Source: Botryllus schlosseri
Lineage: Eukaryota
Direction of reading: 5' to 3'
DNA length: 64,000 bases
Assembly: GCA_051294905.1 (NCBI GenBank)
Contig: CM119373.1
Coordinates: forward strand, 26,288,001-26,352,000
The notes under the pieces were generated by a model, which searched no databases, was not told the DNA's origin, and saw only the letters and a program-made list of their open reading frames with translations. Shown piece after piece: positions 21,908 through 50,800 of the stretch. How positions within the stretch are numbered: the stretch's first letter is position 1; every line of letters starts with the position of its first letter. A program made the translations under genes and the position numbers.

Positions 21908-24601
21908 ATGACTTCGTTCGGCATTGTTGACTTTATTGCTAATAACTCTCTAGATGAAGTTGGAGCGACTCCTGTCTGGGAAAAATTTCGGAAGCATTTC
22001 TATGCTGTCGGTGTTGGCATTTCCTTGTTTGCACTCTATTTTACTCTTGGAATCCATGTCGAGTGTGCACCAGCGTATTCAAACGGAACCGTCATAAAAA
22101 TAGATTTGTATTCGCGGCATGTCAACGAATATTGTGGGAACAACGATCAGTTGATTGTATTCAGGTATTCTGGATGCATGCTTGTTGGCATGAATGCCAT
22201 TATTCTTTTGGCTGCTTCGTATTGGCTTTATCTGCCGAATGCGATTAAACCACTTCGAACCTTCTCCAAGATACGAGGATTAGTCAACGATATCCATTTG
22301 CCATGGGAGGAGTTGAAGCAGCTCATGGCAACTCCAATGACGGCAGAGGAATTATCGACGACCCCCAACGAGCCAACTGATAAGTTATTGAAACAGAAAA
22401 AAATACGCGAAATAATTAAACTGCTGCCATCATTTAAGGAGGAGAAAGATCACAATCATCAGCAAACAGCCGATTCTAGCAGCAGTTGCTGTTGCAGATC
22501 CCCCAAATGTCCCTGTAAGACACTTGTAGCGTCCTACCTATTTAGAAACTGTGTTCTAGGAGTTCTATTCATCCTCGCTATTGCCGGAATAGTATGTCTC
22601 ACAATACTCATGCTCCAAACTGGCTACACATTTCCCTGCACATACGATTTGACAAGTGACGGCAAGAATTACATTTGTGCAGTCGGTGGCACATCAGTCG
22701 CAATAGTATGCACCATCGTTTGTGTACCTCTACTCGTATGTCAATTGATAGCGATCGGCTACGGATCTGCACAAGCGATCAAAATTATATTGAACGAGAA
22801 TCGCAAGGACGAAAAGCGAAAGAAAATCAACTATTCATCAGTTAGGTTGATTGTCAGATTCTGCAAAAGTTCCCAGTCGCCACGTTCTGGTATTTCAAGT
22901 AGTTTTATTGAATTCTTTTTTTCTAAAGAATTCGAAGAGACTGTTAATCGTAACGTAAATATATCAGAAATCCGGTCAGACGATGAATTGGGTAAGCTAT
23001 CACGCGCCCTCTATATTGACGAAGACCCCTTACGCGACCTAACATCCGATATGAGAGAATATGAGACTACGCAGTTTCGCGGTATCGTTGATATAACCAA
23101 GTACAGCCTAAAACAATATTATAAACTTGCTGAGATGCTGGCTAAACACCAGCTATGGGAGACTTTCGTGTTTCTGCTAGGTAATATCAATGAAGATTTT
23201 CAGAAGTGTGAAGAGGAAGACATAAACGATTTCTCAAGGTTGATCATCAATTTTGATTCCATTGCAACGAAATATCATGATGGAAAGAAGTTATCGAATG
23301 AGTTTTACGAAACAGGATCGTGCTCTCAGAATTTTGACAGTAATAGCATTTTGTATTATGCAATACATAACGGAAACATGGACAATTTCGACGTTGCGTT
23401 GTTTCTTCTGTCTTGTTTCAAACCGATCAACCCTTACGTACATTATTACGTTCCCCAGAAAAATAACCAAAATAGTGTACCAGCATTAGCATACATTAAG
23501 TCACTACCGCCAACCTATACAAAATGCGCGAATTATCCAAAGCTGGAAACTGAAATAAATAAATGCAATACTGCTACGCATCCGGAATATGAGTGTCAAA
23601 AGGCACTCAAAGACACACTGGCGGTATACAAGGAAAAAGCGCAAGTTATGCAGTCTATTATCATAGGTATATTGTCAAGGCGGAAATTTCGTGATTGGGA
23701 TGAGACTGCATCCGAATTCTTGAAATTGGCGGTAGAAAAAGGACACCATGAAATCGAATTAGCTCTTTTAAAAGCATTTTTCACAGGTAATCCGTTGAAA
23801 TATCTATGTAAGAAGCATCGCGGAGTGAAAAAATCTATTCCGAGCGACCGCTGTATAGAGAAGATATTCACCGACTTCAATTACGAACTTGACGATTGCA
23901 AATATTTGGTTGCGCATCTGGCAGAAACTCATTCCTGGTCACTGCTCGTAGGATTACTGAATCATACGAATACTAGATGTGACGAGATGACACCTGAGCA
24001 GAAAGAGTTCTTCAGAAAACTAAAAATAGATCTTCAACTACCCCAACAAAATTCGAATTCAAACGGGTGTGGTGAGAATATCGTATGGGCGGCTCTGGAA
24101 CAAAACCGACGCCGGGACGGCATCCGATTTACTGTCACGAACTTCCTTCTGGATGTTTCTGAACCGCAAATTCTCTACGTCATTAAGGCTGGTTCAGATA
24201 CGAAAAGACTGAGTAAAGACCCGAGGAGTAATCCACAAAATACGCAAGAAGACAGCAAGAAGTTCAAAGATGCCCTTGCAAAATTCGAATTGACATATCT
24301 GCTTCACCGTTATCAGAACAACATTGAGAAAGAAGATTTAAAGAAGATTTTAGCTGACGTGCCGATTCGCGAATGGAATGACAATGTGCGCAAGCTTGCT
24401 GAGCTTGCATCAAGTAACGAAGATTGGGAATTCTTGATTGCCATACTCAAGACGCATATTGCGGAAAACATTTTGAAAGGAAGCCATATCGACATCAATC
24501 CCACTAACGTGAAAGTTATTTGGGGTTTGATAAAGGCCGAGCGAGACCCATTTCTAAATGTATGTGATATTATTCTAGAATATTTCAAGCCACCGAAATA
24601 A
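21908..24601 (+). CDS. 897-aa four-TM LRRC8/pannexin-like channel protein with a non-LRR repeated helical (ankyrin-like) C-terminus
   Basis: Uninterrupted ORF. Hydrophobic segments at aa ~31-49, 87-107, 206-236 and 263-285; Cys pairs in both predicted extracellular loops (C53 VECAP, C76 VNEYC, C244 FPCTYD, C257 YICAVG); TPVWEKF resembles LRRC8 KPWWDVF and YWLYLP resembles FWFKFP; acceptor-like TTTCACAG ends 8 nt before the ATG. Confidence 0.85.
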   Translation: MTSFGIVDFIANNSLDEVGATPVWEKFRKHFYAVGVGISLFALYFTLGIHVECAPAYSNGTVIKIDLYSRHVNEYCGNNDQLIVFRYSGCMLVGMNAIILLAASYWLYLPNAIKPLRTFSKIRGLVNDIHLPWEELKQLMATPMTAEELSTTPNEPTDKLLKQKKIREIIKLLPSFKEEKDHNHQQTADSSSSCCCRSPKCPCKTLVASYLFRNCVLGVLFILAIAGIVCLTILMLQTGYTFPCTYDLTSDGKNYICAVGGTSVAIVCTIVCVPLLVCQLIAIGYGSAQAIKIILNENRKDEKRKKINYSSVRLIVRFCKSSQSPRSGISSSFIEFFFSKEFEETVNRNVNISEIRSDDELGKLSRALYIDEDPLRDLTSDMREYETTQFRGIVDITKYSLKQYYKLAEMLAKHQLWETFVFLLGNINEDFQKCEEEDINDFSRLIINFDSIATKYHDGKKLSNEFYETGSCSQNFDSNSILYYAIHNGNMDNFDVALFLLSCFKPINPYVHYYVPQKNNQNSVPALAYIKSLPPTYTKCANYPKLETEINKCNTATHPEYECQKALKDTLAVYKEKAQVMQSIIIGILSRRKFRDWDETASEFLKLAVEKGHHEIELALLKAFFTGNPLKYLCKKHRGVKKSIPSDRCIEKIFTDFNYELDDCKYLVAHLAETHSWSLLVGLLNHTNTRCDEMTPEQKEFFRKLKIDLQLPQQNSNSNGCGENIVWAALEQNRRRDGIRFTVTNFLLDVSEPQILYVIKAGSDTKRLSKDPRSNPQNTQEDSKKFKDALAKFELTYLLHRYQNNIEKEDLKKILADVPIREWNDNVRKLAELASSNEDWEFLIAILKTHIAENILKGSHIDINPTNVKVIWGLIKAERDPFLNVCDIILEYFKPPK

Positions 24602-29951: not shown

Positions 29952-30410
29952 GTTGTGCTGACGTGAAGGTTTAAAAACGTGGTTGATAAACTGTGTGGCC
30001 TATGTTATCTCCATATTGAATTCATGCGGCCCCGTCATCTACAAAATTTGAAAAGTGGCCCGCGACACGTTTCGAGTGGGCCACCCATGACTTGAGCACT
30101 TCTAATACATTGCTGTAGTTTACTGCTGCATACCAAGAAATGTACAATGTAAACTGTATATTAACATAGATTTAAAATAACAAAAAAAACGTGAAAACAT
30201 GATTTTACTACAAAACGGAAGCATTGTAGTGAATATGAATTCGAAATCAGTGAATTCTACTGTTCCCTTTCAGATATCAGTTCATAAATGCAAGTCTTCA
30301 CCTTGGAAACTAAGATAGACAATGGTGATGATAATTATCCAAAGACATCGCTGTTCTGTATTATTCACAGCTTGTATGGGGTCAGAGATTATTTCTCACT
30401 GCATCACAAA

Positions 30411-30788
30411 ATGGAGATACTTCACCTGCGTCCTTCGGATATACGCTTCATTAGAAATACCATCTCTCCGAGATTCAGCGATGGCGGCCACGTTAACACG
30501 GTCGCAAACGAGCTTATGAGTGGCTTACTGGACGAAGAGTAGCCTACATTACCACGATGGAGGTGTTTTGGGATGACCAGGATCACATCTACTACACGCG
30601 AGACAACCGCATGCTGTATGTATACCGGATGGCTGAATATCGAAGACGTATCGAGGCATGCAAGTGTTTGTCGACCGGAAACGTCCAGGTGACTACGAAA
30701 AGATCACCACGAAAAATAACGGGACTACCGTACGCCTTCGGAACGGCGCCAGAACACTTGAGCATTGTGACTGCGAAAAAGGGAATCG
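30411..30788 (+). pseudogene. ParB/sulfiredoxin-like exon, copy A (disabled)
   Basis: MEILHLRPSDIRFIRNTISPRFSDGGHVNTVANELMSGLL...TMEVFWDDQDHIYYTRDNRMLYVYR...KITTKNNGTTVRLRNG is colinear with 45220-45593; net +5 nt at ~30540 (creates TAG) and -1 nt at ~30656; ends CG|GTGAAT. Confidence 0.85.
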
Positions 30789-34337: not shown

Positions 34338-34568
34338 ATCTAGTACAATATCGGTGTAATAATAGATCCGAGCTGGAATCGATTTGAGATCGTGTCCAAA
34401 TCCAAGCTCGTGTCTGGCATAGCTACCTAAATTCACTTGAAAGTTAATGCAATTAGTGCACGACGTAGTTACCACCCTGGCTGGGGACTCCAATTCATGA
34501 CACGAAAGAGACTATCCATTAAAAATAGGCTGCGCCCTGTCAATAGCTTTACCAAATAATTTCTTAAG

Positions 34569-35200
34569 GGAATTTGACAAAGATGGACAGCGATGGTCGC
34601 CCTCGCGTATGTGGACGTCCTTACACCTCTGAGTGGACAGCATCATTTTCTCCATTCTCGAAATCTCGATCGATACGGAGTTCGAGATCACAAACAACGA
34701 GATATTTGTGTTGACTATGTTTTCGAAGTATACAATGACTCCATAACAATCTACAGTGACGGCTCGCTCCAAGTTTCACGACTGCGCGGGCATAGCAGTA
34801 TTTATCCCTGATGATGATCATGAAACTATTATTAAGTGGCGTTTCTCAAATCAACTATCCAGTATCTCACTGGAGCTGCCGGAAATATTATCGGGCTTGA
34901 GGTGGATAGTGCAGTACGGAAAGTCTTCAAAATATGATATTCTTTAGAATTGCCTGACTGGCCTTCAGCTTATCGGTCACTCGAGCTAAGAACCGCATTC
35001 ACGGCAAGGCACAATCCTGGGTGACATAATTTCGTTACAGCAACAAGCAAGCAAAATCGGTGTAGGCTTCCATTTCGTCTGGATAAAAGGGCATGTCGGA
35101 ATTCAACGAAAGGAAATTGCTGACGTGTCCACGAAAGAGACGGCGAACGATGATTCGTCTGCTTGGTTCCCGATCTGGCCACACGAGTGTTGTTACCAGA
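34569..35200 (+). pseudogene. LINE-derived RNase H exon, copy A (disabled)
   Basis: Acceptor TTTCTTAAG|G; colinear with 49420-50008 (YSDGS, GIAVFIPDD, SLELPEI, FVWIKGHVGI, EIADVSTKE, FPIW); stops at 34630-34632, 34945-34947 and ~34987, plus frameshifts. Confidence 0.85.
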
Positions 35201-36212: not shown

Positions 36213-38098
36213 CTTATTATTATTATTACAAACATGAGTGGTGCTTTTCGCCATTTATGGTCTTGTGCGCCACGGTCGTCAGGAAATTCAAATCAAGCAG
36301 TAACTAAATGAACTTATTACAACTTATCACGAACTCAGCGATGGCTGTGGACAATTGCGATGACGAGAGTATAGGTTGCGTATGGTGAACGGTATATGTA
36401 ACTGATTGCAATAGGTAATAAAAATGATCGATGAAAGTCGTATTTAATGCACGATATCAAAATGTGTTCGACTGTTTCGATGACATCGCATTCTTCGCAC
36501 ATCGGAGAGTCCGAGCAGCCGATTCTGAATAAATGGGATGCTACTCCACAGTGTCCTGACCGTAGTCGAAATATCAGGCGTTCGATATAGCGACTGCCGT
36601 TTTTCTCCGGTCCTGTGGTGAGTGTGCTGTGGAATTGCTTGTAGTGGGATTCCCGTTCATCGGCAGAGTATTCGCATTGCCAGATCTCTTGGGTAACTCT
36701 TTTCATTGCGGCTTTGGCGTCTGGCACGGTAATAATTGGAGTTTGGCTCGATTGATCTTGCGTTGACGAGCCTACTCGGGCTAATTCGTCTGCTTTTTCG
36801 TTACCTGGAATTCCTGCGTGTCCCGGAACCCAAAAAAATTCAACAGCGATACCGGTATCATGGATATGTTTAAATATTTCCAATATGGATACAATCACGT
36901 TATTTGATGGTCGGTTCAGAGGTCTATAAACCGTCGTTAATGCGGATAGGCAATCTGAGAAGATGACGTAAGTGTGGTTTCGCGTGCCGTGGTCGAGTAT
37001 CCAAAATAATGCATGTTGAATCGGCTTCAATTCCATTGTAAAGGCTGATGATATCGGTGAGCAGGTACGAGAGATTGCGATATCATGTACCGGAATATAT
37101 ACCCCGTAACCAGCGCGATTGGATTTTTGGAACCGTCTGTGTAGATTGCCACACTGCCCCCATATCGTTCAAACATGAAATCTAGGCATATCGATTTGAT
37201 GTTTTCCAGTATTTCGCATTCCGAAGTGTATTTAAGTAGATCCAGGTCTGCGACGGGAATCGGTATTGTCCATGGTGGTGTGGTTAACCACTGTTGTGTC
37301 CCAACTGTCACGCGAGTATATGCGATCGTGAAATGATGTTAAAAGCTTTAAAATTCGGTTTTGTGATGCAATATATTTCATGCCACGAGTCTTCTACTAC
37401 GTTAAGACAAGGATGTCGAGGCGGTTGTTGTCCAAGTAATTGGCATCGGTAATTCGTGCTTAGATACTTGTGTCGTATGTCTAAGGGCATTTCGCCGCAC
37501 GCTGCTTGCAATACCCAGGCGGGTGTGCTACGCATAGCTCAACAGCAGATCCGTAGCGCAGCGTTTTGTATCGTCTGGAGCCGCTGTAGGTGACATTTAG
37601 GAGCGAAATAATACGCGGGAAGTGCATAGTCAATAAGTGACCGGATAAACGTTCTGTACACGATCAGTAGAGTTTCTGATATGGTATATCTGTGAGGAGG
37701 AGGAGCACATTCAATCTCCTGCAGCATTTAGCACTTATTTCCTCAATATGATATTTATACGATAGATTGTTGTCAAATATAACCCTGAGAAATTTGAACT
37801 TTTCGGACACTACGACTGGTGTGTTATCAATCCGTAACGCAAGTTCCGGGAGCGAGCGCTTCTTAGTGAATTACATTGCTACGCTTTTGGATTTCGATAG
37901 TATGAAGCCCCATTGTAAACATTAGCGCTAGATTGCATCCAAGGACATTTGTACCTCTGAAATTAGCGATGTTACGTTGAGACCACTTTGCCATAAGACA
38001 CAATCATCCACGAAAAGAGAATTCTCTCAACGTATTACCGAGGTTAAGTCGTTGATCATCACTCTGAAGAGTAGAGGCGACGTGTTTGGACCCTGAGT
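36213..38098 (-). mobile_element. 5'-truncated I-group (I/Nimb-like) LINE: RT end, RNase H, CCHC, (TAA)n tail
   Basis: SPLLFRVMINDL and LFVDDCVLW (RT), YRTFIRSLIDYA, LQTIQNAALRIC, PPWTIP, IYTDGSK, IFSDCLSAL, WVPGHAGIPGNEKADELAR, CEECDVIETVEHILISC; TTATTATTATTATT tail at ~36213; several frameshifts. Confidence 0.92.
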
Positions 38099-38941
38099 TG
38101 AGTTATAAAAAAAAATTGTGTATTTCTGAAGATTGGTGTTCGTACAACTTAATTTCGATATCACGAGACTTCTAGCGCTCTGCACCAGGGGATTTCCCTG
38201 GTAGCCTACGGCTCTGACTATGGCTATGAAGTATTGCTTGTTATTCCAGTTGAAATTGAGGGTTTTGATCGATTTTAGCAGCCTTGTTATTGTTTAAATT
38301 GATATTATTATATTTGGAAGCAAGTTTAGCGACGCATATCAGAAGAATGGTTTGTTGCGTCATGACTGCGTACAGCAGCTGTGCGAATCAAGACATTCAG
38401 CAGAGGTAATATATTACCAATAATTAATATGTGGTACGGCGAAGGATAGTTCGAAGTCAAGTACGGCAGCTCTCAACTGGCACCTATCATTAGCGTACAT
38501 GCCATACTCATGAGAACGTATTTCGCAGCTTCTTTAAGTACGCGGCACAGTTAGGGGAATCGCAGCACCCTATCTTGTTACGGTGACAATTTACACGACA
38601 GTGTCCTGTCTGTAAGCTTAGAAGTGTTTTTCGCAGGGTGCGAGGCAGTTATAGGGAAAAGTCCTGTATAGTTATCTTGGCAGCGACGGTTTCTTGGTAA
38701 CGTTGGGGGCAGATTTCCCAGTAAAGTCTTGAAGTCGGGGAGTTGACTTCGTTAGACTATGTTCTACACTTTGATCATTAAATTCATAGGGCGGCTCCTC
38801 CTACGCGAGTAGGTCGGCGACTGAATCATCATGTATGTCAGAGTGTGATGGAATCCATATAAATGAAATGACTGTATTACTATCGTGCAAGAGAAGGTGG
38901 CTCACTTCCAGTAGGCTATTTAACTGAATATTATATTAATC

Positions 38942-42789: not shown

Positions 42790-45219
42790 GGCAGCTATGG
42801 TTGATCGACAGGCAGATAAAAGTGAGAAAGAGATAGTAATTTTTGATAATTGTTACACAAACACATTTATGGTGTAGTTGGTAGCTACTGTATCGCTGCA
42901 ATCGATAACAAATACGATAACCGCAAAATCGAGCGGTGTTCGATTGAGATTATATGAAAAACGATATCATTTTATAAATTATTGACGATTGTATTCACTT
43001 TGCTTCCTTGAATTTCAGCCCAGCGCCTACTCGGAGACAATATACCCATTGTAACGATTTAATGGGGCTACGTCATAAGAGAACAGATTTTTTTTGGAAA
43101 TTGCGACTATAATATCTTATTGCGTCACCATATCGATCACGATTTGTCGGCTTCACAACCATTTGTCCTTCTAGCTACGACCTATGCTTACGTGATCTAT
43201 AAAGTGGGTAACGGAAGACGGATTGAAATCTGGATGAACCAATGCTGAAATAAAGATGTTGCCATGCACCTTCAAGTACCGCCATCAAAGATAAGACAAA
43301 ATCATTTTTCTGATTCAAACTTTTTGTCAGCAGGTTTTTAGCCAAAGGTATATTTTTCAGCCGCTACGTAACAAAAGGTCAATGACTGTAGCCAGCAATG
43401 GTATTCGGTTCGCTAATCTGAAAACATTTCGCGAGACGGTTCGATACAACTCGTGCGAACCTGCTAAAACTTACCAGTGTACAAAATGAACACGCAATTC
43501 TGTCAATACACTTGTACCTGCATTCCACATAATAGGCCTACGGATATTGTGAGCCGCCGTCACGAACATCTCGAAAGAACTGCTCGTTTAAATTGGCGAC
43601 TTACGTCATCCTTATGATATTTTATTTGAATACAAAATTTTCAAAATTTTGGAAAGCATATCGTACGTCTCTTCTTTGGTGCTTCATGCCCCCACGGAAT
43701 ACATGCACCGATAGTACAAAAACTGCAGTAGACCGAAATAACTGCTCCCAAGAGTAACGTCTGAGGTCGCTACCTGATAATATACGATAGCCGCTAGTTG
43801 CTATGACATTGCATATTTACGGTGGTCGATCTCGACTTTAGTACACACTAAATACTATTACGCACGAACAAGAAGGAAACTGGTGTAACTTAAATATGAA
43901 TTTAAAGGGTCGATTTGCAGATGCTCTGTACTTTTCCCGCTGTTTGATAGTCGGTACAATGTGTTGCATTTAGCTACTGCAGAGATGAAAACAGCGGAAA
44001 GAATAAGAACTGGCGTCGATTATTATTATCACCAACGCCTGTTTCCGCTACACGACAGTAGGCTATCGGTTATCGAAAGGAAATCACATATGCAGGTCAC
44101 ACATTCGAAATTAGATTACAGGCTGTGTCTGTATGTTAGCTTCTACGTCGCCATTCGGTTTTTCCCTAGTGGGGATCCAAATCCAGGCATCACATTGTAC
44201 ATTGTGTGTATTGAGCGTATGTCTGGTTGGCACAGTAGTGTATTTTCGCAGGGAATTTCGTTGAATATTTCTTTACATTCGGAATAGACCGATTTGATGG
44301 CTCTCACGGTGACAGGTTATGAGATTGGGTTGCCGGAATGTTATTTACATATTACGTGGTACAGTTGTTGAGTAAAGGACGCTCCTTTGCAATGTGTCTT
44401 GTAATTTTCGACAATTCTGCGCCCACTCACCAACTCACTGCGCAGACCTTGAGACAACAGGGCGTAACGACTAAAAATGGTCATCACTTCGGATTTTTTG
44501 TGCGCAACTTATATTTTCTGTTCGCAGAGACCGTGTCAGCACTGCACATTTGCGCACGTCCGCAGCTTAGAGAGAACATTGCAGTCCTGTGTGTTAGGGC
44601 CAGTATCCCACTCAATCATCGCGGTTCAGCAGTTTCTGTAAGGATCGTCACCCCCTAGTACCTACACCTAGATTTCGCTTATGTTGTAATATTACATACC
44701 GTGGTTGTGTCATGTGCTCCTAGTCATTTGCATGTAAAGAATGGACATGTTGAAATCACTCGTATTCGATATAAGATTGAGTTGAGAAATTCAGACACTA
44801 TACGCGTTATTTAACATTGTCATCTTCTGAAGATTCGCGCTATTGCAAATTTTTGCGTTATCCCGCCACACTATAGCGGATTTCGCTGGTAGCGTATAGG
44901 TACGCATCAACCGAATGGCGATGACGTATTGCGTTTACTCCAATGCAACACCGTGGACGAAGTATTGCTTGTTACTCAGGTTGAAGATGTGACTGACTTA
45001 CATTGAAATAGACAGGGCCTAGGCCTGATACGTTGATGGTCAGTTTGATGAGGACGAGATGCGACCTAGAATATCAGTGAGGCGTACCGTCGGTGGATTT
45101 TGAAAGCTCTGCTTCTACTCGTTCTTGAAGAGTTATTGCGTCACCACTTCTATTTCTACATGAGTAGCTTTCTTGATTACAGACATTATTCCCTACTAGT
45201 AGCCTAATTATATGTTAAC

Positions 45220-45593
45220 ATGAAGCTACGTAACCTGTGTCCATCGGCTATACGCTTCTCCCAAGATACAATCTCTTCGACATTCCGCGGCGGCGAGCAC
45301 GTAACCACGGTTGCAAACGACCTGCTGTGTGGCCTCCTTTGCGTAGAGGACTTTTCCACGATGGAGGTGTTTCGGGATGAACGGGATCGCAACTATTACA
45401 CGCGAAACAACCGCATGTTGCATGTTTTCCGGGAGGCCGAATGCCAAGGATGTATCGTCAGCATTCCAGTGTTTGAGGACCGGAAACGCCCAAGCGATAA
45501 CAAAAAGTTCACCACGAAAAACAACGGAACTACCGTACGCGTCCGCAATGGCGCTATAAAGCTGTATCATTTCGACTACAACAAGAGGTATTG
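45220..45593 (+). CDS. ParB/sulfiredoxin-like domain; predicted exon 1 of a ParB-like-RNase H fusion (125 aa if unspliced, stop at 45595-45597)
   Basis: Intact ORF with PSAIRFSQDTISSTF, MEVF, YYTRNNRMLHVF and KFTTKNNGTTVRVR motifs of a ParB/Srx-like family; ends TG|GTGAAT, a donor-like site conserved in copy A. Confidence 0.78.
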
Positions 45594-45679
45594 GTGAATT
45601 ACATGAGTTGAAGTTCAACATAGTATTAGTGATCGAATCATTACCATATATCTAAATAATATAAAGGCCCAGGTGGCTG

Positions 45680-45785
45680 ACTGATCTCAAAGACTACTCC
45701 AAGCCGCCTCGGCACCTTCCGCATTGTATCGAAGTCTTGTGATGTTTTAAAATGGTGTAATTTAATGAATAAACTTGTACTTGAA
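45680..45785 (+). mobile_element. L2-like LINE/SINE 3' terminus
   Basis: Reverse-complement similarity to 6160-6255 (GATC...AAGACTACTCCAAG...CATTGTATCG.AGTCTTGTGATGTTTT), ending in AATAAAC. Confidence 0.6.
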
Positions 45786-45801
45786 CTTGATTCGTGCCCA
45801 T

Positions 45802-46387
45802 TAGGGTTGTTGAAAAATGTAGTTTTTCCCGGATCCCGGGTATTCTCTGATTAAACTGTTAGCTTGCCTAAAAAGACTGCAAACCAAATTTGGCTTAATT
45901 CCAAACAGCAGAATCCACCGCAGAGCCATTTTTTTTTAATTTATTCGAAAAAAATGACTAATAATTTTCAAATTTTACTGTCCGCCCCATGAAATTGTAA
46001 AGTTGTCTTTAAAAACGATACAAAAGAAATTTGTCGCAATTCCAACCCGTAGATGCGACGTTATTTAAGTTTTTCATCAATTATTCTGAGATTACCCACC
46101 AACGATGCTATTTTTGCAAATCCAAAACTTTCAACTGCAATAACGTCGCTTTTACCGGTTTGAAGTGAGAAAAAATAGCATCGTTCTTTTAGGCAACATA
46201 ACAATTTCATGGATTGACAGTAACATATCATATTTGTTTAATTTTAAAAATAAACTTAAAATTTCGATTGGCTCTGCGGCGGTTTGCACTTGTTGGAATT
46301 GTGCCAAATTTGGTTTGCAGCGTTTTTTAAGCAACATTACAATTGCATAAGTGAATTCCCGGAATCCTAATTTTTTTAACAACCCTA
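45802..46387. mobile_element. hAT-type MITE
   Basis: TIRs TAGGGTTGTT.AAAAA / TTTTTAACAACCCTA, TSD GTGCCCAT/ATGCTCAT (6/8). Confidence 0.75.
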
Positions 46388-48447
46388 ATGCTCATGCACA
46401 CCAAGTTAGATCAAAGCGACTAAAACCTGTCTCGCCAAATTAGTCTTTCGAATCGAATCGTGAATTTCGCAGATGTGGTCGCTAACGAAGTTCTTCTACT
46501 TTCGCCGCGTACTCAGGTAGTTGTAGGTTATGTACACTATTCTTGCTCGTGTAGTTATACTTTTGGGCTATACTTCTAACTTTTTAAAGTTTTTTTTTTT
46601 AGTCAAATCCACATACTTTTTATGGTTTAGCGTTTGATATGTTCCCGTCGATTTTACGACTGAAATTTTCGTATAGATCGGGCATGACCGGACAATATAT
46701 TATGTGGAACACGATAACTGAATATATTTTCGAAAATTCGACCTGCTAGTGGTGTCATTAGTTGCATTTATAATTTTTATTGAATTATCAGGGTATGAGA
46801 TACTCTAAAGGTTCCGTTGTTTAACCTAATTCCTGCAGAGCTGTCAAATTTGTTACTTTACCATTTAACGGCATTTATTCACGGCACACAGCAAGACAAT
46901 TACACAATGCGATAATAACTTCACAGCCAAACAGCATAGCGATAGCCCCGCCCTACCCCTAAAACAAGTAAAATAACACGCCCCTAACCCCCTAGATTTT
47001 CAAACGTCACCCAATGCATTACAGAAAAACTCACTCTCGGCGACTTTAACAGAATCAATAGCCTGAAAAAGGTGACCAAATAAAAATGTAACTTTAGGCG
47101 GTCTCGCCTGAGCGTTCTCAAATTTAAACGACGGAATTAATAAATCGATCTATTTACATATTGCTCTGGCACGGTGGTGCTTGGCAGGGGTAGTTTAACT
47201 TGGTGCTTGGAAGCCATTGTGTCATAGATAACAGTGACATGCAGCTAACACATCAGATAGCTTTTTGTTATGCCAATTAAAGTGAATAGAATCATACCAG
47301 AAATCGTTTATAGCATATTTTTGAATCACTTCTTTACGTTTTTACGCAATATTTGATAAAATTTGCAGTAAAAATTGGCATGATAAATAAAGAAATGTTG
47401 CAAAAAGTTGCACTATAAAATCCCTCCAAACATCATAAAACATCATAGTTCATAGATTCTGAGTATCTAGGAAGCTGTTGGAAGCTGTAAAAAAGTTGCA
47501 AAAGTTGCAAAAACGTTCCCTAGTCATTATCGATATTGTGCATCAGTCTTGGAGCTGCAATGCCTTACTAAAACATAGTCAAGTCAGACTAACTCCTAAA
47601 TGTATCGGTGACCTTGACCATACATCTACCCTTTTCCACCACATACTTAACTACTTTTCAGACGGATAAATTCTATCTATACTTGAAGTATTTTTTCCCG
47701 ATACTTCTACTCGTAATTGAGTGAAAATTGTCGACAGTTCTTCTCCGAGAGAACGAGGTGTGATTACTTCGACTCACTCTGTAATGTCGAATACGGATTC
47801 CGGTGATACGAATGCCGATTCGGATAAACCACGGTGCGATTAAACTAAATTGCTGTCCGACTCATCATCAAGTGACATCAATCAACAATGCGTTGGGTAT
47901 TTAATGATGTCGTTCGATGAGATGTGTCTTATATAGACCCCTTGCAGCAGCTAGCGCAAAACCCGATCGAATTATATATCGGTCGGTAACGTTACATTAT
48001 TTTCGATTACCTGGATGGATTCAATCTGTATCAATGCATAAATGTTGACTTGGGCTCAAACTTCGAATGGCCAAGGTTCCCTTTTACTCATCCCTAATTA
48101 TAGGATTCTGATTTGAAAATGTCTGCTGGACTTCAACTTCCAAATTTTGCGGATCGGTTTGGTCGCAAAAACATCCTACGAAACTGTCATTCCATGAGAT
48201 GTATATGAGTGTTTATTTACGCTATTACCATGCGTGGGTGCAACCCATTCGGACATGATTTGTAACATTCAGGGTAAGATCGGTGTAATTATAGATCCAA
48301 ATCCGAACCCGAAATTGATTTGAGATCCAAATCCAAGCCCATGTCTTGTCTAGTATAGCGACTTAAAGTCATTAAAAGTCAATTTAATGAGTATATGACC
48401 TGGTTCTCACTCAGTGTCGGAGTCATGGTACGAAATAGCCGATATAC

Positions 48448-49361
48448 CAGGGGTGGGCAGATCTGCTTCATGCGCGTGCCACAACACGAAAATGCAAGAA
48501 TGCGAGTGTATTACGTCACAATAAAATGTAGGCTATCGAATGGAGTTTATTATTGTGTGTTGATACCTGGGCTGCAAGGTGTTTGAAATCAGGCTGATAT
48601 GACTCGAAAGCAGCGCGGAGCAGTTCCTTCAAGTGCTGATGAGCATTTAGGGAAGATTTCAGCTCAGTAATCTTATTACTCCGTAAATCTGTGTTCGTTG
48701 GGTAACTTGTGTTCATTGGGTAACTCGCGAAAACGTTTTGGTGTTTGGTTTCGTAATGACGTTTCAAGTTACTAGACTTGAAATTATTGAGAGAATCTTG
48801 ACAGATAAGGCACATTAGCTTACCCCCATTATCACTGAATGCAGACTGTTCCTCCCATTCTCTTTTAAAAGTTCTATTTTCCTGTTCATGTTTTCTTTTC
48901 TTGTAAATGTCGCTGAACGACATTTCCCTGCAGTTATTGCTAGCCTTTACAATACAAATGAAAGAGCATTATTCGCCATTGTTTGCCCGGAATTGTTTGT
49001 GTCCTGCGCTACCATAATGAATTATTATCAAGTTCATTGTTGATTACGATGATTTTTCGTTGACTGATGAGTGACGGCTATGCACAATTGTTGTGGGTGA
49101 AACGTTTATGTGAATTCGATACGAGAATTCAATCACAAAGTTCTAACCATATAGTGCAACCGTCGACTAAATTTTACAAGTGTTATGTCAGCCATAAGGA
49201 GAGAAACAACACCCAAGCGATACGCATATTGTTATACGTAATAGAATGCATCAATTTATAATCATGTTGAACGTTTCTAGCAAAATAGCGAAAGACATGT
49301 GTAGTAGTGTACATTGTACATGTACAATCTTTTAAAGAGCCGCAGTTTGCCCACCCCTAAG
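48448..49361 (-). mobile_element. Internally deleted hAT (GTF2IRD2/SPIN-like) element, ORF 48516-48923
   Basis: Termini CAGGGGTGGGCA / TTGCCCACCCCT, perfect TSD CGATATAC; ORF has N-terminal KRKHEQENRTFKREWEE...CLIC...NLKRHYETKH joined in frame to the C-terminal LRAAFESYQPDFKHL. Confidence 0.9.
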
Positions 49362-49419
49362 CGATATACTGTACAATAGGCTATTTTCTCTTAATACCTC
49401 CGTCCAATACTTTTTTCAG

Positions 49420-50008
49420 GGATCTCAGCAACGATAGCTACCAATACCCAGTCTTTGCAGCGTGGATGGGCCCTCCCCTCCAAGTGGACTGCAGCCTTGA
49501 ACACATCTCCCGCCGACGACGAGATATTTTTCAGGATTATGTTTTGGACATACACGATCGTTCCAAAGCAATCTACACTGACGGCTCCAGGCTCTCATAC
49601 GGCACTGGCATAGCAATGTACGTCCCTGACGACGGAATTATTATCAACCAGCGATGCTCGGATCCATTCAAATCCAGCAGCGATCTAGAACTGCTGGCCA
49701 AAAAATTGGCCTTGAAGTATATAGTGGAGCACGGTGATGCCTGCAATTACACTATTCTTTCGGATTGCCTGAGTTGCGTTAAGGTTATCGGTAACTCTAG
49801 GCCGCAATCGCGTCAACACAAAATCCTGCGTGATATATTTTCGTTACTTGATCGAGCCAGCAACCTCGGCGTGAGTATCAAATTCGTCTGGATACCAGGG
49901 CATGCGGGAATTGCGGGAAATGTAATTGCAGACAAATATGCAAAAGAGGCGGCAAGCGATGAATCGTTTGGTCCGGACCCGATCTGGACCATCGAGTATG
50001 AAAACTAG
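49420..50008 (+). CDS. RNase H domain (I-group LINE type); predicted exon 2 of the ParB-like-RNase H fusion
   Basis: Acceptor CAATACTTTTTTCAG|G; 195 open codons; D (YTDGS), E (DLELLA), D (ILSDCLS), H (WIPGHAG) and D (GNVIADK) all retained; splice phase matches 45593. Confidence 0.75.
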
Positions 50009-50800
50009 AGCGATGCAGAAAACTTTGGAACGATGAATACCAACCGTGTAAGCGGTGTCTTATAAAAGCCTAGAAGTGGGCCGTGCTACAAGTCGGCATC
50101 TACGGAATAAAAATGAAGAAAATTGACCTGGAGTAAATTATTATAGTAGTCAACGTACAACATGAATACCACAAACAACGACAACAACGATGAATACACT
50201 CGTGGCCAAAAAGTATTACAAGCATTTCTGAAAAGCAAATTTTTGCCCGGAGGCCTGAAACGAACAGCCGTCATTATGACGCATATAATTATGTCTCCGG
50301 TCAGGTCACTGAAGTTCAAGCAACGACTCACTTGGTATTCCTCGTTTGTTTCTTGGACACTCTATCCCACTTACTGATCAGATGCCGGGAATTTGAGTAT
50401 CATCTCCGCTAATTTGGTGTAAATAAAACGCTGCTTTCTTTCTCAAAAATATATCTTTGAACTCTACATCGTTTAACTATACCCCAAAGAACTCATACTT
50501 TCCAGTGAACTGTACTTCTATATAAGTAGTTCGTAAATGAGAGTCCGTAGACCCGTCAGAAGTTGGTGGATTAGTTTGAAGTTGTCCGCTAGGGGAAAAT
50601 CATAGGGAATAGGCTACAGAGCCGAGTAATTGGACCGCGCGGCAAATTCGTTGAAATATTCGATAGATCGGCTCGGAAGTAAATGATCCTCGCGCGAAAT
50701 AGTAGGATCTTCGATACGAACCAGCAGATTTTTGAGTCTGCAAATCTGTGGAATTAGCGTACTCAATATGCATTTTCCTGTCATCATCAATATGATTCTG
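50009..50800 (+). pseudogene. Decayed LINE ORF2 tail downstream of the RNase H exon
   Basis: Out-of-frame remnants RKLWNDEY (~50020-50040), KKYYKHF, CLRSGH* (50292-50312) match QEIWQCEY, SHYKQFH and RLRSGHC of the LINE at 36335-37036; homologous decayed tract at ~35200-35600. Confidence 0.65.

Follow-up and report, generated by a model that had tools for sequence, protein, structure and literature searches.

A LINE-derived RNase H exon spliced in frame to a Tox-ParBL1-type gene: a probable lineage-specific chimeric gene in Botryllus schlosseri

We analyzed a stretch of 64,000 nucleotides of Botryllus schlosseri DNA (GenBank assembly GCA_051294905.1, contig CM119373.1, positions 26,288,001 to 26,352,000 of the forward strand; hereafter the window, whose own numbering is used for plain positions below). 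Two open reading frames (ORFs) in this window, one encoding a ParB-like domain and the other a ribonuclease H (RNase H), are exons of one spliced and transcribed gene, as an initial annotation made from the sequence had proposed. The gene, which we call copy B, has an intact paralog (copy C) and a decayed one (copy A), and RNA contigs join the two ORFs in both copy B and copy C. The RNase H exon originated by exonization of part of ORF2 of a 5'-truncated long interspersed nuclear element (LINE). We read the whole as a lineage-specific chimeric gene that arose from an exonized retrotransposon fragment, and put the probability of this reading at roughly 0.7. The gene structure and the origin described here are very probable, and the balance tips, by a smaller measure, towards a protein of 318 or 319 amino acids (aa) that is made and useful. 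The features of copies A and B are collected in Table 1.

Table 1. Positions of the features of copies A and B in the window.
Feature	Position	Strand	Remarks
Copy A pseudo-exon 1	30408..30788	+	frameshifted over three reading frames; donor CG|GTGAAT kept at 30788|30789
Copy A pseudo-exon 2	34569..35187	+	LINE RNase H remnant with in-frame stops; homologous acceptor TTCTTAAG|G (AAG|G) at 34568|34569
Transcribed 5' leader, copy B	45181..45219	+	RNA contig starts at 45181 and 45193
ORF, 125 aa	45220-45597	+	terminates TAT TGG TGA
Exon 1, coding part	45220..45587	+	122 codons + 2 nt; Tox-ParBL1-type ParB/Srx-fold domain (by homology and model), S9, motif N63-N64-R65-M66-L67
Intron, copy B	45588..49419	+	3832 nt, GT..AG, phase 2; spliced out in the run X1 RNA contig
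Second donor-like GTGAAT	45594..45599	+	contains the ancestral stop TGA (45595-45597); homolog of the donor that copy C uses and of the donor kept in copy A
Intron insertion 1, specific to copy B, dispersed repeat	45616..46392		matches on both strands
Intron insertion 2, specific to copy B, dispersed repeat	46755..47534		
Intron insertion 3, specific to copy B, dispersed repeat	48447..49386		
135-aa ORF inside intron insertion 3	48516-48923	-	Spin-doc-type zinc finger (PF18658, 8.4e-8)
Intron end, last 33 nt	49387..49419	+	polypyrimidine tract and acceptor CAG; clear LINE ORF2 homology begins by ~49403
Exon 2, coding part	49420..50008	+	first base finishes codon AG|G (Arg123), then 195 codons + stop (50006-50008)
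RNase H domain (PF00075)	49562..49954	+	D177, E213, D238, H284, D294 of the 318-aa product
Young dispersed-repeat insertion after the stop	50041..50185		missing from copy C
Decayed noncoding remnant of the LINE ORF2 C-terminus (aa 1136-1231)	50230..50484	+	

Splicing was assessed in assembled Logan contigs. In run X1, a contig of 246 nt with a depth of 15 links position 45587 to position 49420 (AG|GTATTG ... TTTCAG|G). The joint was reported as 45585 to 49418, 'GT..AG (cut +2)', with three ambiguous letters, and the intron therefore runs from 45588 to 49419, a length of 3832 nt. The spliced product is a complete ORF of 318 aa, in which ...AAC AAG AG is followed by G GAT CTC to give ...FDYNKR-DLSND. 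The acceptor, TTTTTTCAG|G at 49419|49420, stands at the start of the 195-codon frame (49421-50008), where the initial annotation had placed it, and the predicted phase also proved right. That annotation had put the donor at 45593 and the fusion product at 320 aa; the fusion stands, with copy B using a donor at 45587. Because this donor sits 6 nt upstream of the predicted TG|GTGAAT donor, the product has 318 aa instead of 320, with the phase unchanged. None of the copy B reads shows use of the donor-like GTGAAT at 45594. The sequence features behind the prediction (the copy B ORFs, the donor-like motif at 45594 and the acceptor, and the donor and acceptor of copy A) are all in place.

The distribution of RNA along copy B was examined in further runs. 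Run X3 has contigs on exon 1 (45193-45557) and on exon 2 (49565-50050) and none in the intron. Intron coverage in runs X1 and X10 is confined to the dispersed-repeat insertions, and there is therefore no locus-specific intron signal. One RNA contig of run X3 carries six linked changes at 49699-49708 that convert A-K-K-L to A-I-S-S, as found in copy C and in the LINE; this variant could be a divergent allele, the outcome of gene conversion between copies, or an unassembled paralog. A tRNA scan was empty, and a bacterial promoter scan was irrelevant to the locus.

A search of the whole 495-Mb genome placed the intact paralog, copy C, 67 kb upstream, with its exon 1 at C3:26266306 (70% aa identity) and its RNase H at 26268005 (65%). 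The copy C junction (L001:1880|3205, CG|GTGGGT ... TTTCAG|G), which removes an intron of 1324 nt, was present in four of four RNA runs from four studies, and contigs of up to 1083 nt extend from exon 1 through exon 2 to ~250 nt beyond the stop. Copy C shares the acceptor of copy B, and the donor that it uses is the homolog of the one predicted for copy B. Its spliced ORF encodes 319 aa, with an end nearly identical to that of copy B. Spliced copy C RNA was found at a depth of 29-65 vs 0-8 in the intron; some unspliced RNA, at a depth of 2-8, would encode the ParB-like protein alone. Copy A is a pseudogene.

The origin of exon 2 was traced through its relatives in the genome. Residues 1-183 are 51% identical to the C-terminal part of ~1242-aa ORFs on many chromosomes, and a LINE ORF of this kind (L019) contains apurinic/apyrimidinic endonuclease (APE), reverse transcriptase (RT) and RNase H (RNH) domains. 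All of exon 2 is derived from LINE ORF2, corresponding to about aa 901-1107 of a 1243-aa ORF2. Compared with ORF2 aa ~871-1169 of the APE-RT-RNH elements, the exon shows 48-51% identity, and the homology crosses both the acceptor and the stop. In copy C it can be followed from ORF2 aa 871, ~110 nt before the acceptor, and in copy A from aa 856; past the stop it continues to aa 1231-1243. No RT core was found upstream of the LINE homology, and this, together with a start at aa 856-871, identifies the source as a 5'-truncated LINE. At the acceptor itself, the LINE coding sequence TTTTTCACAG|ATCTC aligns with TTTTTTCAG|GGATCTC of copies B and C, and the D-L that follows is made up of the LINE's own residues. 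When set against the LINE and P0153 (a Logan ORF described below), copies B and C lack the same 21 nt, and they share a nearly homologous stop, with which the last ~135 aa of ORF2 are removed.

Two other accounts of this exon were considered and rejected. That it is an old host domain is ruled out by LINE ORF2 homology crossing the acceptor and the stop. That copies B and C are independent recent LINE insertions is ruled out by their common truncation region, acceptor, 21-nt deletion and stop region, and by homology of the flanking intron. A word-indexed search with exon 2 returned a single match, P0153 (Logan, SRR25569784), a 196-aa RNase H ORF. Its identity is 51% with copy B and 60.6% with copy C exon 2, against 49% between copy C and the LINEs of this genome. 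P0153 shows the indel, loop and tail states of copy C and retains 7 aa that are missing from B and C. It may be the captured exon's ortholog from another sample, or else belong to the source LINE subfamily or to a closer one.

Sequence and model together identify the C-terminal domain as a type 1 RNase H in which the catalytic residues are kept; its predicted activity would be cleavage of the RNA strand of RNA:DNA hybrids. Exon 2 matched the Pfam RNase_H model (PF00075) with E = 3.6e-13 and 50.3 bits, against a gathering cut-off of 25.8. Residues D54, E90, D115, H161 and D171 (exon 2 numbering) are invariant among copy B, copy C, the LINE and P0153, and the catalytic residues align to the human RNase H1 motifs YTDG, AE, TD(N)S and PGHSG..EAD and to the E. 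coli RNase HI motifs. They had been described beforehand as intact, which they are; the numbering given for them at that time (D179/E215/D240/H286/D296) shifts by -2, to D177/E213/D238/H284/D294. In an AlphaFold2 (AF2) model of exon 2 the core has a predicted local distance difference test score (pLDDT) of 75-92 and the first 36-47 residues are disordered. Foldseek with this model returned the HIV-1 and murine leukemia virus (MLV) RNase H domains, E. coli RNase HI and human RNase H1, with E values of ~1e-8 to 1e-7. The domain is thus like type 1 RNases H in its fold and its D-E-D-(H)-D motifs (YTDGS, ELxA, SDC, PGHxGxxGNxxAD). It is unlike them in that it stands outside any reverse transcriptase and without a hybrid-binding domain, with a ~47-aa disordered linker and the ParB-like domain in front.

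For the exon 1 domain, an AF2 model built with an 18-member alignment reached a pLDDT of 84 and a predicted template modeling score (pTM) of 0.79. Its top structural matches in the PDB were Noc, ParB-CDP and sulfiredoxin (Srx), with probabilities of 0.96-1.0 and template modeling (TM) scores of only 0.43-0.50; in the AlphaFold database, matches at TM 0.7-0.8 came from mollusc, tunicate, amphioxus, cnidarian, dinoflagellate and choanoflagellate clusters. With this model and these matches, and with the Pfam, residue and structural evidence for the other half, the initial assignment of a ParB/Srx-type fold to the N-terminal part and of an RNase H to the C-terminal part is supported. Sequence searches gave a mixed return. 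Pfam yielded chance-level matches only for exon 1 and 18 paralogs, there being no Pfam model for the domain, and a PDB sequence search with exon 1 found nothing. A word-indexed protein search with exon 1 gave zero candidates because of its length window (69-219 aa) and 5-mer requirement; an exhaustive profile search returned 3603 cluster representatives. The closest named protein relatives are ascidian (Styela clava, Clavelina lepadiformis and Phallusia mammillata). Among ten representatives scanned with Pfam, two are metagenome proteins in which the domain is C-terminal behind PT-HINT: P0110 combines PT-HINT with a ParBL1 domain at 350-452 of 454 aa, and P0136, which has RHS repeats in addition to PT-HINT, carries the ParBL1 domain at 897-998 of 1006 aa.

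Tox-ParBL1 domains have been described as having a predicted ParB fold, a conserved N-terminal Ser and an [NT][RT][RT] motif whose last two positions are mostly R, and as including metazoan members (Zhang et al. 2012, Biol Direct 7:18, PMC3482391); the arginine motif is said to be equivalent to the ParB DGHHR motif (PMC3482391). In copy B the serine is S9, set in P-S-x-I-R-F, and a Ser occupies that site in 121 of 178 family domains as well as in nearly all paralogs. The core D-N-R-R-L of the family was counted in the same 178 domains (D 149, N 170, R 164, R 159, L 177). Copies B and C and their ten nearest paralogs read N-N-R-M-L, and the more distant paralogs of the cluster have N-R-R; in B and C the third position of the [NT][RT][RT] motif is lost (N64-R65-M66). 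By homology, the exon 1 domain fits membership of the Tox-ParBL1 family despite this altered motif. It resembles the described family in its ParB/Srx-type fold, its N-terminal Ser and the N-R-R motif of its wider relatives, in its C-terminal position behind PT-HINT in two metagenome proteins and in its occurrence as small proteins in many eukaryotes, metazoans included. It departs from it in the N-N-R-M-L of the B/C subclade (against D in 149 and the second R in 159 of 178 domains) and in its fusion with an RNase H, a domain absent from all of the 150 best representatives. Given the change to NNRML and the equivalence to the ParB motif, the nucleotide-handling chemistry of the subclade may be changed or lost. 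No experimentally determined ParBL1 activity came up, and no systematic search for one was made.

At least 30 ParBL1-type paralogs were found, mostly open and almost all of them in the 24.9-29.2 Mb interval of C3 (loci L001-L018), with one match on C15. Their C-terminal tails differ widely, their ORFs range from 119 to 300 aa, and the exon 1 tree contains two subclades, canonical DNRRL vs NNRML. The cluster looks like a fast birth-and-death family, and it shows eukaryotic Tox-ParBL1 genes as large, fast-turning tandem families, here with at least 30 copies in ~4 Mb.

The paralogs that have no RNase H point to the state before the fusion. In the nearest of them, L002 and L007, the ORF ends in ...TTG TGA AT or ...TTG TGA GT, with the stop lying within GTGAAT or GTGAGT. 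In the exon 1 tree L002 lies next to B + C (support 83/89) and B groups with C (88/90). Homology of L002 and L007 with copy C is found in exon 1 and neither in the intron nor in the LINE, and we therefore place the LINE insertion behind the ancestor of copies A, B and C. We propose that a 5'-truncated LINE, bringing roughly the final third of ORF2, from the end of the RT region through the RNase H to the C-terminus, landed just downstream of one tandem ParBL1-type gene. The stop codon context of the host gene, G-TGA-AT, would have doubled as a 5' splice site, GTGAAT, and the LINE coding sequence TTTTTCACAG would have provided a latent acceptor. Splicing between them would drop the stop and join the ParB-like ORF, in phase 2 and by chance in frame, to the RNase H frame inherited from the LINE. 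The LINE C-terminus would have been lost to a stop codon that arose later, after which the cassette would have been duplicated to give C, A and B, with B and C remaining intact, transcribed and spliced, and A decaying. Copy B would subsequently have gained three intron repeats, one repeat after the stop, and a new donor 6 nt upstream.

Selection was then assessed between copies B and C. The open frame has clearly been kept; constraint is moderate on the RNase H core and almost absent elsewhere, a pattern that fits a young or fast-evolving gene. The four indels in the coding sequence (3, 3, 3 and 6 nt) are all in frame (P = 9e-4), vs 4 of the 23 indels that are multiples of 3 in 1278 nt of noncoding blocks (intron and 3' flank), and four is fewer than the ~17 expected (P = 2e-4). 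When the 162 observed substitutions were placed randomly, the frame stayed open in 0.6-0.7% of trials (P = 0.006). The ratio of nonsynonymous to synonymous substitution rates (dN/dS) is 0.48 in the RNase H domain and 0.60 over the whole of exon 2 (95% bootstrap interval 0.40-0.97), and the corresponding ratio for polymorphisms (pN/pS), from RNA-contig variants, is 0.47 in copy C, a value based on small numbers and linked variants. A dN/dS near 1 had been named in advance as a result that would tell against the gene; exon 1, at 0.94, shows such a value, and the RNase H domain, at 0.48, does not.

A reading in which selection plays no part has to be weighed against ours. It supposes that the locus produces a young, effectively neutral chimeric transcript, a donor within a stop and a latent LINE acceptor having merely come within range of each other in a birth-and-death family. 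We consider it unlikely, if a serious competitor, and several observations that weigh against the chimeric gene speak for it. Amino-acid constraint is weak in exon 1, as its dN/dS of 0.94 indicates, and the exon 2 linker has a dN/dS of 1.14. At the nucleotide level exon 2 (80% identical) is not better conserved than the homologous intron blocks (80-86%); exon 1 stands at 87% and the 3' flank at 78%. In copy B pN/pS is 1.3, subject to the same small numbers and linkage. One copy of the three, copy A, is already dead, and transposable element (TE) insertions lie in and around copy B. In copy C, a G>T change at L001:3746 in every contig of run X13 creates a stop at codon 306, at a cost of the last 13 residues; it falls past the catalytic core and comes from one individual, and the C-terminal tail seems to be dispensable or polymorphic. 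On the other side, copies B and C are ~16-20% diverged and yet have kept full frames, with the indel and stop statistics given above, the RNase H domain has evolved at a dN/dS of 0.48 with all five catalytic residues kept, and copy C splicing is efficient, as its depths show.

Further points count against the chimeric gene. The ParB-like domain may be inactive, judging from the loss of its second core arginine. The copy B junction comes from a single contig in a single run, the run type is a guessed label ('RNA?'), and in the raw-read run X19 all 112 of 112 reads match in part only (to paralogs or repeats), giving no independent support to the copy B junction. Neither protein-level evidence nor an ortholog in another species was found, in a protein-collection search with exon 2 and at the loci L022 and L023.

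A second rival would divide the locus into two unrelated units, a small ParB-like gene and a stand-alone LINE RNase H ORF, exapted or decaying, that starts from its own ATG at 49466. Each ORF is open by itself, but RNA contigs link the two exactly at GT..AG and in frame in both paralogs, and the copy C contigs, which span exon 1 to the 3' end, include none seen to start at the RNase H exon; we regard such a division as very improbable. Still less credible is a junction produced by chimeras of the Logan assembler or by a processed retrocopy present as DNA, since, for all that the evidence consists of assembled contigs instead of raw reads and the run type is guessed, four independent runs and studies show the identical copy C junction, at canonical GT..AG sites and with the frame exactly kept, the whole-genome search found no intronless copy, and depth is restricted to the exons.

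The initial annotation had suggested a role in defense, in anti-retroelement activity or in R-loop handling, and for none of these specific roles has support emerged so far. With a ParB-like domain of polymorphic toxins and an RNase H from a retroelement, the chimeric gene nevertheless unites two domains with a history of conflict, and this makes it a candidate, open to test, for a factor in anti-retroelement activity or nucleic-acid surveillance. It is conceivable, though doubtful, that the protein is an effector directed to RNA:DNA hybrids, its RNase H binding and cutting, for example, R-loops or the intermediates of retrotransposition. The ParB-like domain, with NNRML in place of the DNRRL NTP-binding motif, might in such an effector be a binding or regulatory module and no longer the ancestral toxin enzyme, a suggestion we make with equal reserve. 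More speculative still is the idea that the host made a restriction factor out of an enzyme of the parasite itself. In that case the LINE RNase H would bring the toxin-derived ParB-like module to RNA:DNA hybrids and destroy or block them, with LINE target-primed reverse transcription intermediates, viral replication intermediates and R-loops as possible targets, and the setting would be a fast-evolving tandem family of ParBL1 conflict genes.

The repeats in and around copy B were also examined. Its intron grew from ~1.3 to 3.8 kb via three repeat insertions, and the TE insertions that the initial annotation had recognized in it are indeed dispersed repeats, the three copy-B-specific segments each having between 929 and 3957 first-look candidates. 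The intron repeat at 45799-46370, with ~4000 first-look candidates, matches genomic copies on both strands over nearly its full length and is therefore a long inverted-repeat element resembling a miniature inverted-repeat transposable element (MITE). The repeat at 50041-50185 begins 35 nt beyond the copy B stop and reaches RNA contig depths in the thousands; it is young, as its other genomic copies are 93-99% identical, and it may alter the 3' untranslated region of copy B. Between copies A and B lies an unrelated second LINE fragment on the minus strand (36416-38869; ORF2 aa 628-1207, 39-45% identity), which includes a 233-aa ORF at 36335-37036. The window also holds an 897-aa ORF on the plus strand at 21908-24601.

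The architecture of the gene was compared with what has been described elsewhere. The initial annotation had not recognized it in any known gene, which accords with the absence of RNase H from the 150 best ParBL1 representatives. No fusion-like protein was found in a collection of 5.8 billion proteins, which may not include this genome's proteins, and where the best exon 1 relatives lie, at L022 (a Logan contig) and L023 (Styela clava), there are ParBL1 genes with no RNase H within reach. Every step of the proposed birth is legible in the sequence, from the stop used as a donor, the latent acceptor and the in-frame join to the truncating stop, the duplication and the dead copy that serves as an internal control. 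Should the protein prove functionless, the locus would still be a clean example of the birth of a new coding exon.

With a TE-derived exon and an in-frame host-TE mRNA, the fusion is a host-TE fusion gene. Known fusions by exonization of a LINE in a host gene are Lyosin (L1 ORF1p-MYL4) and BCNT p97, which has a LINE ORF2-derived exon (Kitao et al. 2025, PMC12129022); documented co-options of LINE proteins are few, and ORF2 fusions are stated there as remaining to be elucidated (PMC12129022). As in Lyosin and BCNT p97, a LINE coding segment is spliced in its own frame as the terminal coding exon of a host gene, and the fusion product is lineage-specific. Unlike in those cases, ORF2 has contributed its RNase H domain, in which the catalytic residues are preserved, the host part is a domain derived from a toxin, and the fusion is known from the paralogs of one genome. 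The host-transposase fusion genes of Cosby et al. (2021) are alike in that a TE gives an exon and a splice site to a neighboring host gene and so creates a new architecture. They are described as fusions of the DNA-binding domains of DNA transposases, mostly yielding transcription factors, whereas the domain captured here is that of a retrotransposon enzyme.

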